Positions 1-60,512 of a DNA stretch of 64,000 nt are shown piece by piece. Position numbers and translations under genes: made by a program. The DNA comes from Malacoraja senta (lineage: Eukaryota). Every line of letters begins with the position of its first letter. Position 1 is the stretch's first letter. Under the pieces are notes generated by a model. That model saw nothing but the letters and a program-made list of their open reading frames with translations, ran no database searches and had not been told where the DNA came from. Where the stretch lies: positions 21,266,001 to 21,330,000 of the forward strand of contig CM075987.1 of the NCBI GenBank assembly GCA_038087875.1, given 5' to 3'.

Positions 1-182
1 ATCGATAGTCTTGAAATTAGGACGCTGTTTGGGGAATATCCCTCGGTCCGTTTTTCTCGAGGAACAAGGATGGGGTCATTCTAGTACGACCTCTCAGATC
101 TGGCATCCTTGTTTAATCGTGTCCACCGTTCCACCATACTGCAGAAGGTGGAGAAGTGCACAGAACCGAGTTGTAACATCCA

Positions 183-324
183 AAGATGTTGGAGTAACTC
201 AGTGGGTCCCGATCCGAACGTCGCCCATCCATAATCTCCAGATATGTTGCCTGACCCGCTGAGTTACTCCAGCATTTTGCGTCATTCGATTTATAAACCA
301 GCATCGCAGTTCCTTGTGTCCAAA
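183..324. mobile_element. Short fold-back Penelope-like (pLTR-derived) insertion
   Basis: GGAGTAACTCAG...CTGAGTTACTCC inverted arms; flanked by 12-bp direct repeat TTGTAACATCCA (171-182, 325-336). Confidence 0.75.
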
Positions 325-479
325 TTGTAACATCCAGCCTGGATATCAAACTCTCAAGTTGTCAGTGTGGACAGTTTAGCACCAAATGAAAACCGCCCAA
401 ACCCCATCATGCAAAGTTGTGGAGAAACATACATGATGTGTAAACACGTGCACGGGAATAGGCATCGCCCTGCAATCGC

Positions 480-720
480 GCGAGTCCCTTAGAGGCTGGA
501 ATTTGATTTGTTTTACCTCATAAAACCCGTATCGGTCGTGATCGTATCTCCCGGTGATACCAGATGTTTGTTGACCTCGGCCGGTAAAGTGGCGCGCTTT
601 CGGGCCGTCGCTAACCGAATGTCCACCGCCATCTTTGTAACTGGCAGTTTGCGGGCGGCCAATATAAATTGCGGTCCGGCATTTTTGATGTGGGCCAATC
701 ACACGCCTTCCAAATACGTT
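480..720. promoter_or_regulatory. CpG-rich EXOSC2 promoter/exon 1 with YY1-type sites
   Basis: Locally high CpG density; CCGCCATCTTT at 626-636 overlapping the start codon. Confidence 0.6.
517..632 (-). CDS. EXOSC2: Exosome component 2 (RRP4), first coding exon
   Basis: Translates MAVDIRLATARKRATLPAEVNKHLVSPGDTITTDTGFMR, matching the human EXOSC2 N-terminus (KHLVVPGDTITTDTGFMR). ATG in AAGATGGCGG context; phase-2 donor AG|GTAAAA at 516-515. Downstream exons are outside the window. Confidence 0.93.
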
Positions 721-874
721 AAAATTTATTCCCGAGTTTATAGATCCGAAATAAACAACAACAAAAACGAATAGGCAGAGAATAGAAATCTGACGTAAAA
801 ATAAAAATTTTGGAAACATTCAGACTGAGTAGCATCGGTGGAAAAAGAAACAAAGTTAACGTTTAAAATCACAA

Positions 875-1140
875 AATAACACAAAGTCTCGGAGTAAGTA
901 AACAGATCGGGCTGCAACTGTGGAGAACATGGATATAAGAAGTTTCAGGTCGAGATCTTAAATCGTCAGATTATCTAAACAAAGAAAACTTGAAACATAA
1001 ATCAAGTTAGTTACTAAGAAGGGTTCCAACACGAAACGCGTCATGTGCATGTTTTCCAGGGATGTTGCCTGACCCGCTGAGTTACTCCAGCATTTTGTGT
1101 CTTTCTTTGATATAAATCGGCGTGTGCATTTCCTTATTAT
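875..1140. mobile_element. Degenerate Penelope-like pLTR copies in inverted orientation
   Basis: Minus copy ~875-960 and plus copy ~1015-1140 (GATGTTGCCTGACCCGCTGAGTTACTCCAGCATTTTGTGT). Confidence 0.6.
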
Positions 1141-1189
1141 TACTTATTGAACAGTCAGGAGCATGTGGTTTGCCAGCATATTCTGGAAC

Positions 1190-1510
1190 AGCGTGTGTCC
1201 GCCATCTTTAATGCGGGCAGAGCAGCCTCAATTACTGCTCGGGACTACTTTCGCCATATTTTTTACTGGCAAACGCTGCGCGGCTCGTCTTTTTCCACTC
1301 GACATCTTTATGACTGGTATACTGCCGAACAATCTCACCAGTCACTCCGTTTTCTTTACGCGATCCGGCTTCTTTGGCGTCAGCTGCCATGTTTATGATT
1401 GAGAACAATTAGTTTTAATTTTGGCGACCGACTATCGGTTTTCATAACTAATCATTACTCACACAGTCGTTTATAAATTACATCGGTTGGCGCTTCCTCC
1501 AGGTACCAGT
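1190..1510 (+). promoter_or_regulatory. CpG-rich element with clustered YY1/THAP-like motifs (putative CIZ1 distal promoter or non-coding exon)
   Basis: GCCATnTTT-type motifs at 1201, 1253, 1301, 1386; many CpGs; possible donor CAG|GTACCA at 1502/1503. Confidence 0.5.
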
Positions 1511-1784
1511 GTTGAGATCGTGGAATATATTTCACAGGAATATAGTTACAACTATGTTAGTTAAGGTTAAATCTCTAATAAAACCGGGGAATCGCTGTCA
1601 AATGTTGTGACTGAAAATGGTGCTCACCGCCATCTTAAGTTTGTGTTCATTTGCAATATTTTAGAGATTCATCATAGAAACAAACCTGAGGGATCCCATC
1701 CCAACCTGAAATGTCATCTGCACATTCCCTCAACAGATGCTGACTGACCAGCTAAGCTCCTCCAGCACATTGTGTGTTTCTCCT

Positions 1785-2060
1785 GGAAACAGGCCGTTCA
1801 GCCCACCGAGTTCACACCGTACATTGACCACCCGTTCACACTGGTATCTTATCCGACTTTCTGGTCTCCTTACACTCCAGGGGTAATGTTGCAGAGGCCA
1901 ATTCACTTACAAACCTGCATATATTTGGCATGTGGGAGGAAGCCAGATCACCCAGAGGAAATCCCCATGGTCACAGGGAGAAACTCCACACAGACAGCAC
2001 CCAAGGTCAGGATCTGGCGCTTTGAGACATCTCTTCCAGCTGCGCCATTGTGTCGCCCCT
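1785..2060 (-). mobile_element. V-SINE (HE1-like) copy
   Basis: Reverse complement of the V-domain core (TGTGGGAGGAAGCCAGATCACCCAGAGGAAATCCCCATGGTCACAGGGAGAAA). Confidence 0.7.
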
Positions 2061-3557
2061 CCCCGTAACTGCCACCAAAGGGAACGAGGCAAAAATCATC
2101 CCATTAATACCGTTAGCCTGTTCTTCAAATGTGACAAGCTCATTCATATGCCAGAGTCCATGAAGTGTCATGTATTTACCATTTTCCACATTAATGTTTA
2201 AGCAGATGGGTTTCGGGAACATGAACTATGAACAGGAACATGCTCAAGGATGTGACATTTGGAACATAGTGTGGAAAAATTGTGGTTGTCCATTTTGATA
2301 GAAAAACAATAAGATCAAGTATATTTAAATCGTGAGAAGCTGAAAAGTGTCAATGTTCAGAGGAACCCGGGTGTCATTGTAAACAAATTGTATACACATC
2401 ACTGAAAGTTTATACAGAGTTACAGTAAGCAATCTTACCACAACAGGATTTGAATAGAAGAGTAGAGATATCCTTCTCCACCTATGTGAGATGGAACCCA
2501 GTGAGATGGCACCAAGAACATTGTGCACAGGTACAAACACCTCAACTAAGGAAATATGTTTCTGCAATAGATGGAATGCAGCAAACGTTCTGCCCTTTCA
2601 TCAAAATTCCAATTGACCCTCAAAATCACTTGGACCGTTACTGATACTTCTGTCTCCGTTCTTGATCTCTCTGTCTTCATCTCAAGAGAAAAACTATTCA
2701 TGGACATTTACTGCAAACCCACCAACTTCCATAGCTATTCAGACTACACCTCCTCCCATCTCTTTATTCCATAATGTTGTTATCTCCATTCCTCTCCCCA
2801 CTATCTGATTCCATCCACTTCTCTTCACCTTAATCTACTTATCACGTGCCAGTTCTTACCCTATTCCCTCACCTCTTTATACTACCTATTACCTCTCCAT
2901 TCTTTGAGTCCAAAGGAAAGGTCTCGACCCAAAGCATCATCTGTCCATTTCCTTCCACAGATGTCTCTCTGAGTTTGATCCAGAAAGTTTGTGTTTTGTA
3001 GCGAAGATTCACCAGCTTGACTCATGGGATGGCTGATTTGTGGTATGGGGAGAGATCAAGCAGTTTGGGCTGCACTCCCAAGTTTGTAGAACCAGAGTTG
3101 ATCTACTTAGAAACACAAAATTCATATTGACCTTGAAGCGAGGTATCCCCTTGCGAAATGACAATGTCACTCCAGGAAAAATACTGTGATATCTACCTTA
3201 TCTGTGCTTCTCTTAAATGTATATACTTTTATCAGGTTGCCCCAATGAAAACATTTAAGTTTGTCTAACCTGTCCTTATAGCCAGAAAAACACAAAATGC
3301 TGGAGATGTCCTCCAGAGATGCTACCTGACCCGCTGAGTTATTCCAGCATTTTGTTTTTTTTTGGTAAACCAGCATCTACAGTTCCCTGATATTTATACA
3401 CACTCCAATCTGGGCAATCTCTTGTGTCTCCGTCTATTTTTGTGTTGTCAGAATATTTACTAATCAGACTACCTAAGTATTGTATCAGCAATTTGGGGGT
3501 GTTCAAACGGAGTAACATTTGAAATCTCAGCCACTGCCAGACTTTAATGATAGTGCA

Positions 3558-3651
3558 GACAGATACAAAATGCTGGCATAACTCAGCGGGACAGGCTTCA
3601 TCTCTGGAGAGAAGGAATGGGTGACGTTTCGGGTCGAGACTCTGCTTCAGA
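3558..3651 (-). mobile_element. Penelope-like pLTR fragment abutting the CIZ1 promoter
   Basis: ATCTCTGGAGAGAAGGAATGGGTGACGTTTCGGGTCGAGAC matches the family consensus seen elsewhere in the window. Confidence 0.75.
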
Positions 3652-3886
3652 TATCGCCATTTTTATTGCTGGCGGCATCAGCGTGTAAAGCGCCATGTTT
3701 CTTATTGGCAGAAGCAGCCCGGAGTTACAACCTCCAGGCCGCCAGGAGCGCTGCGGCGGAAGTTTTGGTCGCGAAGGTCTTTCCTTTTCCGTCGCAAACG
3801 GAACGGTCAGAGGTGGCGAGGGTCTACTTTCTCCGCGAAAACCACTATAATCATCATTATTATTAATAATAAAGGATTTGGTTAGC
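3652..3886 (+). promoter_or_regulatory. CIZ1 proximal promoter/5'UTR (CpG-rich, YY1-type sites)
   Basis: CGCCATTTTT at 3655 and CGCCATGTTT at 3691; CpG-rich; immediately upstream of the ATG. Confidence 0.6.
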
Positions 3887-4011
3887 ATGATGTTCCCTCA
3901 GCAGCAGCATCATTTACAACAGCAACTGCTTCAGCTCCAGCAGCTCATTCATCAACAGCGGCAACAGCACCATCGCCATCCACTCCCGCCACCACAGACA
4001 GGCCCCAACCG
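3887..4011 (+). CDS. CIZ1: CIZ1 coding exon 1 (polyQ/His prion-like N-terminus)
   Basis: MMFPQQQHHLQQQLLQLQQLIHQQRQQHHRHPLPPPQTGPNR resembles human MFSQQQ...LLQLQQLLQQ...; donor CG|GTAAGT, phase 2. Confidence 0.9.
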
Positions 4012-5280
4012 GTAAGTCCTTCAATGAAGGCAGACTGAGAAGCTGGAACAGAGTTGTTAAAAAGTTTGTCGTTTGAAAATTCTGTAGGAAACCAAAATCT
4101 AATTACAGTGTCACTGAAATAATCGATGCAGTAACCTATATTTGTCTTTTTGACACTGATTCTAGAATAAGTAGCCGTTGGTTCGGTTCGATTTAGAATT
4201 AAAATTTAAACACAAACGCCTGCGGAATTGTGATCGGAAACGGGATCTGCGTCTAACCACGTTCAAGACTGTCTGTTGAGTGAGTGTGGCCAGCATTCAG
4301 GAGAATTTGCACGATTTATTTGGTGCTAATATTCAACTCTGAACACATACTCAAACAAATGACTTAATCAACTGCCGTTACTGTTAATGAGATCTTGTGT
4401 CATTCGTTGCCATGTTTCCGAGATTGCGCCATTTCTACCCTTCAAAGGTACTTATACTTTGGGAGATCCAGAGGTTGTGAGAAATGCTCAAGCAAATGCT
4501 ACTATTTATGTACATTCTAAAGTAAGGCTGGAACTTTAGATATGCTAAATGACCTGCATGGGATGCCACCATCTCTGTCAATGCTAAAACAAACACATAT
4601 AATATTTCAAACGATCTCAATGAAGCAAATGGGAAACCTGGTATCTGTTGTTATATTGCCATAGAAAACAAGTACAGATATGTCATTTTTAGGAAAAAAG
4701 TTTATTCCTTTTCCCGAGTCACCTCAACCCGGCTAAGATCTGTGAAAAGAAGTGAGGCATCAATAGTGATCCTCTCCCCACTAACCAAGTTTTATCCTGT
4801 GATGGCCGTTTCCACTAGGCCCACAAGCGGACGCAAGAAAACAACTTGCACTCAATTTCATCATCATATGACAAAATATTAGGAGCACTGGAGGATGCAG
4901 AAGGTGCATTTGATTCTCATTTCCAACACAATTTGAAGCAGTTATCTTTCAGGCTATTTAAAAGAAGTTTTATGAGTTGTTAAATTCTGGGAACAATATT
5001 GACTGTAAACCAGGCGTTAATTAGCATTTGCAGAAGGTGAGTGCAGGTCAATTGTTTTAGGTGTATGGTGCAAATATAATTACACTTTAAAGCTCTGATT
5101 TGAAACTGGGTCAGACAACATTACTCCTGTCCATTTCTACACCGGTTTTAACATCCTGGGAAAGTGAAGTTACTTTGTTTCAATGTTGTACAGGGCAGAC
5201 AGGTAATTCTGAGTAACAGAGTTGGTCCTCGTGGCTTGATCTCAAGATGCAAGTGGTTTATTCAAGTGCATGTAGGGAAA

Positions 5281-53665: not shown

Positions 53666-54781
53666 AGCACACAGGAATTTCAAGTTGTGAAAGTTGGTCC
53701 AAAAATGTCAGTAAATACACAAGGAGCGAAGAAGGGTGGGACTCAAAAAGTCACTTTTCCATGTTCTCCAGAGATGTTGCCTGACCCACTGAGTTACTCC
53801 AGCACTTTGTTTTTTCCCCCCAAAAATGCCAGTTCTGCCTTACATTTTCAACTCCTATTTTAACCAATTAAAATATTTCAGAAAATGCAGATTCATAAAC
53901 TATCATATTTAGATGGAAACACAAGGAAGTGCAAATGTAGGATTCTTGAGCAAAATACACAGTGCTGGAGTACACTGCAGGTCATGGAGTTTATACTGCA
54001 TGGAAATAGGTCATTTGGCCCAACTTGTCCTTACTGACTCGGATGCCCATTATGCTAGTCCCATCAGGCAGCATTTATGGAAGGAATGGACAAACGTTGT
54101 TTAGGTTGGGACCCCTCTTCTGACTGAATGTCGGAGGGGGGAGAAAGCTGGAAAAGAGGTAGTGTGGGACAAAGCTGGAAAAGAGGTAGTGTGGGACAAA
54201 GCCTGGCAAGTGATAGGTAAATACAGGTGAAGGGGATTTGATGAAGATTGTGAGTTGGAATCCAACGCTTATCCCCTCCAGAGACAGAGGCCAATTAAAA
54301 AAAAATCCCTTGTTGTTCTGGCTGAGTCAATTGATTAGACTGTTTGCCTTTGCGATATTAGAGCTAATACCTATTAAAATATCGAGGTATTTCGTTTTTC
54401 AAAGGTTTTTATTTATTTTTGTTTGTTAAATTAAAAATATATATATTGTTGTGCTCTTATTATAAAGAATGGCACACTTGTTATGTTTGGGGGCTGGTGA
54501 CACTGAGGCAATTCTCATGGTCAGGTTAGGACTAAATGTGGTCGTGATTATTGGATTTTTGATTTGAGCAGTTAGTTTACAGAGTTAGATTACATTTTAC
54601 GTTGCACAAACAAAATTATTTTATCAGCACTGTTATAGCTCAGGAACTCAATCGACGAGAAACTCTGTTCTACAGTTGAAATGCCAAGAAGGCATCTGAA
54701 AGGAGAACAAAAAATCGGCATTGAAGCAATGCAATGCGCCTTTAAAAATACCAGGACTGAACCTCTTTCCGCGACGTAAAG

Positions 54782-55045
54782 ATGGCAGCTTCCTGCGTTG
54801 GTGCAGGGTTGTATTGTAGCCGTCTTGCAGCTTGCAGGAATGTCGGTAAATGGCAGTTCCCGGCGCTGCAGTCTGGCTGTCGGTTGTATGGTCACGGCGA
54901 GGGTTTGCAGAAGAAGCTAACGGAGAGATTGATAGCTGGCAACACAGCGCTGGGCTTTGCATTTGTGCTGGGTGGCACCCTGGGTCTGTATCAGACAGTC
55001 AGGCATTATGCACGGCAGCATCAAGCCCAGCAGCAACATACAAAG
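54782..55045 (+). CDS. PTGES2: Prostaglandin E synthase 2, exon 1
   Basis: AAGATGGC start; presequence-like N-terminus and hydrophobic ALGFAFVLGGTLGLYQT (human LALGGALGLYHT); donor AAG|GTAAAC. Confidence 0.88.
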
Positions 55046-56624: not shown

Positions 56625-57226
<602 letters not shown>

Positions 57227-59871: not shown

Positions 59872-60512
59872 CTAGACCAAGTGCAGACCCGTTGGGTCTG
59901 TTCCCGCAACGCGCGGTTGCAAGAGGAGGGGGCGGCCTGATGTCATCGCGCAATGCCACGCGCTAGGCGTACGCCGTCGAGACGCTGCGTACGACGTCGA
60001 GACGCTGCGTGCGACGTCGAGACACTGCGTACGCCCTCAATGCGCCTGCGAGCCGACAGGCCGTTGACGCGCGGGATTTTCGGACAGTGCAAGCCAGCGA
60101 GGAAGGCGAAAAGCAGCGGGGGGAGTAGGCGATCTTTGGCTTCGGCCAGCGTGACAGAGCCTGGCCTTGGGGGGGGGGGGGGGGAGTGGAGGAAGTAAAA
60201 TTGCTAGCGAAATGGGAAAAATGTCGGTGTTTTTGGAGGAGAGCCAGGCGGCAGCAGCCGTTATGGTCGCTGGCCAGCAGGAGGCGGAAAAAATGAGTGA
60301 GTGGGGGGGGGGGGGGGAAGGATTTTATTTAAAATGTGTACTGAAATATGACTAAATTTAATGAGGAGTGGATGAGCGAATGTAAAAGTGAAATGGCTAG
60401 CAAAATGGTAAAAATCTCGGCGTTTTTGCGTGTGGTTTTGGCGGAGTAACGAATCAAAGGCCAAAAATATGACATACACCTACACACACACAGAGTTTTA
60501 AAAGTATATAGA
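59872..60512 (-). mobile_element. Non-autonomous Helitron
   Basis: Minus strand starts TCTATATAC and ends with hairpin CAGACCCAACGGGTCTG + CACTTGGTCTAG; A|T insertion, no TSD. Confidence 0.82.

Follow-up and report, generated by a model that had tools for sequence, protein, structure and literature searches.

An orientation-fixed 22-nucleotide module with a YY1-type half and a candidate THAP-type half, repeated upstream of the EXOSC2 start codon in cartilaginous fishes

The EXOSC2 promoter and its upstream copies

The stretch of DNA considered here, referred to throughout as the window, comprises 64,000 nucleotides (nt) of the skate Malacoraja senta (assembly GCA_038087875.1, contig CM075987.1, positions 21,266,001 to 21,330,000), and carries near its beginning two genes arranged head to head: EXOSC2, on the minus strand, and a CIZ1-like neighbour, on the plus strand. 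Coding exon 1 of EXOSC2 (517..632, minus strand; MAVDIRLATARKRATLPAEVNKHLVSPGDTITTDTGFMR) is followed by a donor GT at 516-515, and its translation matches the exosome complex component RRP4 of sharks and skates; the first coding exon of the CIZ1-like gene, which is Q-rich, spans 3887..4012 on the plus strand. The region between them contains copies of a module of about 22 nt, read in the EXOSC2 sense, in which a YY1-type core is preceded at a fixed distance by a TGCC box, and whose most proximal copy includes the EXOSC2 start codon. The analysis addresses a single locus, and the whole of it is built on the EXOSC2 promoter and its orthologous promoters.

All copies lie on the minus strand of the window, the sense strand of EXOSC2, and are named here by their position relative to the start copy. 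The latter, module 0 (626..648; cTGCCAGttacAAAGATGGCGGt), reads cTGCCAGttacAAAGATGGCGGtgg on the sense strand, and its internal ATG (632-630) is the start codon of EXOSC2, which identifies a YY1/TISU-type start (TISU, translation initiator of short 5′ untranslated region). Module -50 (676..698; AAAAATGCCGG) is degenerate in this species, with GGCAT, GGCC replacing TGCC, an overlapping CCAAT box, and a matrix score of 14 bits; three other skates carry a perfect YY1 core at this place. Further upstream are module -573 (1199..1221; cTGCCCGcattAAAGATGGCGGa), whose reverse complement TGCGGGCA has the classical TxxGGGCA form, module -625 (1251..1273; tTGCCAGtaaaAAATATGGCGa), which is kept in other skates, and module -673 (1299..1321; TACCAGtcatAAAGATGTCGa), a degenerate copy (GACAT, GGTA) in three of the four skates, including Amblyraja and Leucoraja, and decayed further in Rhinoraja. 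A distal pair is formed by module -3028 (3654..3676; cCGCCAGcaatAAAAATGGCGa), with TGCC in Amblyraja and Leucoraja, and module -3064 (3690..3712; cTGCCAAtaagAAACATGGCGc), which is identical at 21 of 22 positions to module -529 of the shark Stegostoma (E = 3e-5).

The 20-mers listed in the sequence-only reading of the window were all found at the coordinates claimed for them, and its count of seven copies stands in part: five are exact matches to GCCATNTTT-N6-GGC (628, 1201, 1253, 3656, and 3692), the only ones in the 64 kb and all with that pattern on the plus strand, whereas copy 1301 is degenerate and copy 678 is mutated in this species. These five compare with 0.02 matches expected, a number reached in 0 of 100 shuffles, and shuffling the three CpG-rich patches alone yields 0.002 composites. 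A repeat search independent of the pattern placed six 22-nt copies in one family, 1301 among them. The window holds 15 GCCATNTT cores, eight of them in 628-4409; GGC is found at +15 in five of the six cores of the CpG-rich patches (P ~1e-6 corrected for 30 offsets) and in none of the seven cores outside 628-4409. A scan with a matrix made from the copies returned no further match in the window, and a search of Rfam with positions 1-5000 gave no match. The spacer, which had been described as varying freely, is in fact constrained at four of its six positions (A, G, Y, and A after TGCC; 21 modules, six species), and the unit is therefore one contiguous motif of ~22 nt.

Two additional YY1-like cores in the region are without TGCC. 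The one at 1384..1406 (minus strand; AAACATGGCAGC) starts a short open reading frame (ORF) ending at a GTGAG donor-like site; the other, at 1627..1649 (minus strand; TAAGATGGCGG), is directly followed by GTGAGC, is kept in four skates, and had been missed in the first reading as a core (1629) with its second half absent. A consensus splice donor follows each of them, in the contexts ATGGCG/GTGAGC (1620-1640, minus strand) and ACTG/GTGAGA, the latter closing a 17-codon ORF (1336-1392, minus strand); both donor-linked cores are kept in four skates, and Rhinoraja carries a deletion of the second donor region. They may represent alternative first exons of EXOSC2 that are absent from the annotation.

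Conservation in orthologous promoters

The loci compared were those of the skates Amblyraja radiata, Leucoraja erinacea, and Rhinoraja longicauda, the electric ray Narcine bancroftii, the chimaera Callorhinchus milii, the shark Stegostoma tigrinum, and the sturgeon Acipenser ruthenus, the orthologues being reached from the exon-1 peptide via full-length EXOSC2 proteins. Intergenic identity of the window to the three other skates is 96.7%, 95.7%, and 91.9%, which marks it as belonging to a fourth rajid. Every locus compared has the module, invariably in the EXOSC2 sense and with one copy on the start codon, its TGCC occupying positions -14 to -11 when counted from the A of the ATG. Translation starts at the motif's own ATG in this proximal copy, both in the window and in the seven other species, but not in the upstream copies. 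Narcine carries modules 0 and -67 and Stegostoma seven modules from -561 to 0, while Callorhinchus has the start copy and six modules at -53 to -411, five of them fully within a 70-bp tandem array, all in the EXOSC2 sense; the sturgeon has a single module, at the start codon (gTGCCCgtagtTAAGATGGCGGc).

When sense-strand cores are counted in each lineage, TGCC is found at -14 in 4/7 in the window skate (P 6e-9), 2/2 in Narcine (P 3e-5), 6/7 in Callorhinchus (P 6e-12), 4/6 in Stegostoma (P 8e-8), and 1/1 in Acipenser (P 6e-3), and antisense cores number zero in every lineage counted. Across ~210 kb of orthologous loci, the pattern is confined to the region upstream of EXOSC2 and to its sense strand. 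Conservation in other elasmobranchs, on which the sequence-only reading had made its case depend, is accordingly strong, the spacing being identical in skates, an electric ray, and a shark; with that same spacing, the composite also occurs in a chimaera and, at the start codon, in a sturgeon.

Between the promoters of Stegostoma (700 bp) and the skate (3300 bp), the modules are essentially the sole alignable parts, the remainder giving a few chance-level matches of 10-11 nt against the best module pair mentioned above. Several copies can be paired across lineages: the likely orthologues of module -50 are -52 in Stegostoma, -53 in Callorhinchus, and -67 in Narcine, and the skate distal pair (-3064/-3028, 36 bp apart) corresponds to a pair in Stegostoma (-561/-529, 32 bp apart). 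Since the spacer signature CAT(A)TC is common to skates, Narcine, Stegostoma, and Callorhinchus, the start and -50 copies would predate the chimaera-elasmobranch split, and thus at least two copies appear older than that divergence.

The 22-nt motif and its candidate factors

The motif was derived from 21 modules of six species, with skate orthologues and Callorhinchus tandem units counted once each. Its consensus in the EXOSC2 sense is T(-16) n TGCCAGYA wy AAAsATGGCGG; the counts out of 21 are T 18, G 19, C 19, C 21, A 14, G 16, Y 21, and A 16, followed by AAA, s, and ATGGCG. Only positions -6, -5, and -1 vary inside the motif, and the flanks are at background. TGCC is exact in 16 of the 21 modules and has at most one mismatch in 20, always at -14 to -11, so that the rigid spacing proposed for the two halves is borne out, TGCC starting 14 nt before the A of the ATG throughout.

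The assignment of the 3′ half to YY1 is well supported by its sequence. In the core AAnATGGCG(GC), AAA is kept in 19-21, ATG in 21, and GCG in 20 of the 21 modules, and the sole free base coincides with the known degenerate n of GCCATnTT; every defining base matches the consensus, as had been proposed for this half. To our knowledge, YY1 is the only common promoter factor with a directional site just downstream of the start site. The closest relative of this half is the TISU, or core-promoter YY1, motif SAASATGGCGGC, a 12-nt element with an invariant ATG, which is the start codon in 64% of the genes carrying it, these genes being enriched for RNA processing (PMC2518114). The likeness extends to the AAsATGGCGG core, to the ATG serving as the start codon of the gene, to the nature of that gene, an RNA-processing housekeeping gene, and to the strict orientation of the motif with the gene (PMC2518114, PMC11160661). 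The difference is that TISU is a single 12-nt element, whereas the EXOSC2 module adds a fixed upstream TGCCAGYA box and is repeated two to eight times in one direction. A second TISU-type start is present in the window, that of a PTGES2-like gene, whose ATG at 54783 lies inside the YY1/TISU-like sequence gtaAAGATGGCAGC (54771-54800, plus strand).

A clustered, one-directional arrangement of YY1 sites has precedents. Kim et al. (in 2006) reportedly described clusters of same-orientation YY1 sites in the control regions of Peg3, Xist, and Nespas, which resemble the present array in having multiple sites of one orientation within a CpG island; they differ in belonging to mammalian imprinting and X-inactivation regions and in having no fixed partner box, while EXOSC2 provides a housekeeping promoter of fishes.

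The proximity of the YY1 half to the start codon raises the question of whether the module could be a complete short-leader core promoter, in which TGCCAGT would be the initiator and AAAsATGGCGG the TISU/YY1 downstream element; transcription would begin 10 nt ahead of the ATG, at an A, the fixed spacing would reflect leader length and not two factors, and the array would be a series of alternative start sites. In agreement with this, GCCAGT matches the human initiator BBCABW at the start copies of skates, Narcine, and Stegostoma; TISU leaders have a median of 12 nt, with the motif at +5 to +30 from the start site (PMC2518114), and YY1 sites lie up to ~30 bp downstream of start sites and act in a strand-specific manner (PMC11160661). 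The evidence from transcripts is mixed and weak. In a skate transcript contig (L004), agreement with the genome sets in ~15-18 nt ahead of the ATG, at CTGCC or immediately 5′ of it; the leader of this contig measures 43 nt, however, of which the initial 28 nt belong to a dispersed repeat, and the junction may therefore be an artefact. Moreover, BBCABW occupies the fixed position in only 7/21 modules as compared with 16/21 for exact TGCC, the sturgeon start copy and skate module -573 read TGCCCG, without CA, and ORF P0283, derived from a transcript, continues for 66 nt or more ahead of the EXOSC2 ATG. The initiator interpretation therefore seems unlikely, and a THAP-type GGCA site, although unproven, would be the better fit to the sequence of the 5′ half. 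The repeat fused to the start module in L004 represents either a lineage-specific insertion or a chimeric assembly.

The THAP domain requires a GGCA core (PMC5511047), the complement of the TGCC box, and the THAP1 site is written TNNNGGCA (PMC11811203). The A at -7, corresponding to the T of the THAP site, is found in 16 of the 21 modules, and both the sturgeon start copy and skate module -573 have a perfect TxxGGGCA. Mammalian promoters are co-occupied by THAP1, YY1, and HCF-1 (10.1101/2020.07.19.210773, PMC13631171); in human THAP1 chromatin immunoprecipitation sequencing, the top discovered motif is the YY1 motif with a fixed extension (PMC3950668), and the Tor1a THABS probe is supershifted by anti-YY1 (PMC5511047, as data not shown in that paper). 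The module is akin to this co-occupancy, demonstrated at SHLD1 and myelination genes, in having a GGCA-type box beside a YY1 site in a CpG-island promoter, and departs from it in that the EXOSC2 modules mostly read TGGCA, not GGGCA, and that the literature searched describes co-occupancy only, with no fixed YY1-THAP1 spacing and no paper on THAP1 and TISU, an absence that is not proof of novelty. EXOSC2 and CIZ1 were not found in the examined supplements of PMC11811203. A conceptual parallel is the THAP11/ZNF143 composite (SBS + ACTACA), likewise a rigid pairing of a zinc-finger factor with a THAP protein that involves HCF-1, in which a constant 8 bp separates the motif centres (PMC12698189); its sequence differs, and ACTACAnnTCCCA occurs in the window as one chance-level match (21651) and not in the promoter.

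A further interpretation dispenses with THAP proteins and assigns the 5′ half to another factor, such as NFI on a CTGGCA half-site, or the whole 22 nt to one long zinc-finger protein. CTGGCA and TTGGCA are NFI-type half-sites. One or the other is present in 14/21 modules, and a contiguous motif with constrained spacer bases is what a single long footprint would produce; nevertheless, five of the 21 modules, including the sturgeon start copy, have C at -10 and consequently no TGGC (three of them have the full GGGCA), no known family was matched, and the ZNF143/THAP11 composite is missing from the promoter. This interpretation is regarded as quite improbable. Other candidates were discarded: RFX, Kaiso, HIC1, and ZNF143 for the TGCC half, owing to a misfit of consensus (judged by eye), and NF-Y as a general partner, since CCAAT occurs in few copies only. 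A coding repeat was also dismissed, as the ATGs of the modules are not in one frame.

Origin of the array and significance of the module

The copies appear to share a common origin. Some upstream copies retain start-like bases after ATGGCGG (in Callorhinchus, ATGGCGGACATCC at -53 as compared with ATGGCGGTGGACATTC at the start), which suggests that the modules are duplicates of the EXOSC2 start region; the module would thus have arisen there and then been copied upstream. The same observation is compatible with the upstream copies being neutral, functionless relics of start-codon minisatellites, their spacing derived from one duplicated unit, and Callorhinchus offers a young example of such a process, a 70-bp tandem repeat of 5.3 copies with 92% identity. 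However, in skates and Stegostoma the flanks and the free bases have been randomised and both halves kept, Tandem Repeats Finder detected no array in the window, where the flanks of the units are unrelated, the shark and skate copies look orthologous, and a 22-nt motif would not survive such distance in neutral copies, making this explanation very improbable. Each copy would have kept both of its halves while the surroundings decayed, which argues for selection on each copy and not for recent copying. In Callorhinchus (L007, 5576-5954), the minisatellite fills most of the 718-bp intergenic region, its unit consisting of one module and a (TG)n tract.

Taken together, the data point, at even odds (a probability of about 0.5), to a bipartite, orientation-fixed module of ~22 nt, composed of a YY1 3′ half and a likely THAP-type 5′ half and arrayed from the EXOSC2 start. 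The two-block anatomy, the rigid spacing, the single orientation, and the deep conservation are features of the aligned promoters themselves; the proteins bound and the function of the array we infer from sequence. The TGCC box would most likely be bound by a THAP1-type THAP-domain factor beside YY1, HCF-1 could bridge the two, and, by recruiting YY1 together with its partner to the CpG-island promoter, the array of like-oriented modules would set where and in which direction EXOSC2 transcription initiates.

Several observations weigh against this interpretation. With regard to the 5′ half, what stands of its earlier identification as a THAP1 site is the nearly invariant GGCA; TNNNGGCA, or TGCCNNNA on the sense strand, is exact in only ~11-12/21 modules and GGGCA in 3/21, most modules have TGCCAG and not the TGCCC preferred by THAP1, and the A at -7 may merely be part of the A-rich run before the ATG. 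As all copies derive from one unit, their common spacing is inherited, and only its retention argues for function. Skate transcript contigs start at least 43 to 66 nt before the ATG, so a leader as short as TISU strictly demands is not established, and such transcripts would pick up additional ATGs from the upstream copies. The PTGES2-like gene, which provides the window's one other TISU-like start, lacks TGCC at -14. Finally, in L001 (Logan run SRR26493809; 760-800), EXOSC2 begins with MAVDIRLA at gtaATGGCGGta, where ATGGCGG is present but the TGCC box is missing, as are the array and a CpG island.

The layout of the intergenic region bears on the proposal of an ancient link from THAP1 and YY1 to CIZ1. 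In Callorhinchus, the same CIZ1-like N-terminus lies 718 bp from the EXOSC2 ATG, whereas in skates the gap is 3.2 kb and bears several copies of a dispersed repeat (core CTGACCCGCTGAGTTACTCCAGCATTTTG). Five copies of this repeat lie at 230-287, 1016-1106, 1723-1780, 3283-3365, and 3556-3647, the second and fourth also being delimited as 1048-1105 and 3305-3362. The copy at 1016-1106 separates the first CpG patch from the second, and repeat copies bracket the patches; these repeats are likely to be the agents that stretched the region. The comparison of the two spans suggests that the three patches are one bidirectional CpG island split by insertions. Skate insertions would thus have split one array into three CpG-rich patches, and the two copies near CIZ1 are its far end, pushed apart by insertions and now lying beside that gene. 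All copies in all species point the EXOSC2 way, the proximal one containing its ATG, and Stegostoma and Narcine keep the array with an upstream stretch of 6 kb that has no called gene; a YY1/THAP1 link specific to CIZ1 thereby loses its basis, and the connection with dystonia drawn in the sequence-only reading was an association by name only.

The orthologous gene call for the CIZ1-like neighbour has an 881-aa product with zf-C2H2_jaz and zf-C2H2_14 domains; the name CIZ1 was not confirmed, as a homologue search with a 325-aa ORF gave no match and tblastn with the Q-rich exon was uninformative. Intron 1 of this gene contains a pair of YY1-like sequences, GCCATGTTT and CGCCATTTC, 21 nt apart (4409-4440, plus strand), in the same orientation as the array and conserved in Amblyraja and Leucoraja. 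The PTGES2-like gene follows, with a GST_N/glutaredoxin exon at 56867-57226; a CpG-rich tandem repeat of ~20-nt units (cgtcgagacgctgcgtacga-like) at 59930-60050, apparently inside this gene and not at a promoter, gives the strongest CpG-island signal in the window. Alternative first exons were also considered for the Leucoraja X2 isoform, which proved to be a case of exon skipping.

With respect to previously described elements, the TISU/YY1 element, clusters of YY1 sites, and co-binding of THAP and YY1 are of already known kinds; what is notable here is the rigid 22-nt form, its arraying, and its conservation for roughly 450 million years at the EXOSC2 start. The locus constitutes a natural experiment, with ~20 copies in six species in which all bases have diverged save two blocks at one spacing. 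It also documents the expansion, in skates, of a compact bidirectional promoter of 718 bp (its length in the chimaera) to 3.2 kb, with survival of its functional units. If the partner is a THAP protein, the copies would supply a binding grammar for THAP1, YY1, and HCF-1, together with a set of naturally occurring variants to use in binding assays; should the partner be of another kind, the module would point to a YY1 partner not yet described. In both cases it is a conserved, testable piece of promoter grammar. It is tempting, although rather doubtful at present, to extend this to TGCC-N10-ATGGCGG as a general, rigid THAP-YY1 (HCF-1) composite of jawed-vertebrate housekeeping promoters, at least 450 million years old, with tandem amplification recurring in the promoters of cartilaginous fishes. 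Were this true, the THAP11/ZNF143 composite would have in the module its counterpart for YY1, and amplification of a start-codon module would be a means by which cartilaginous-fish promoters gain strength and direction.

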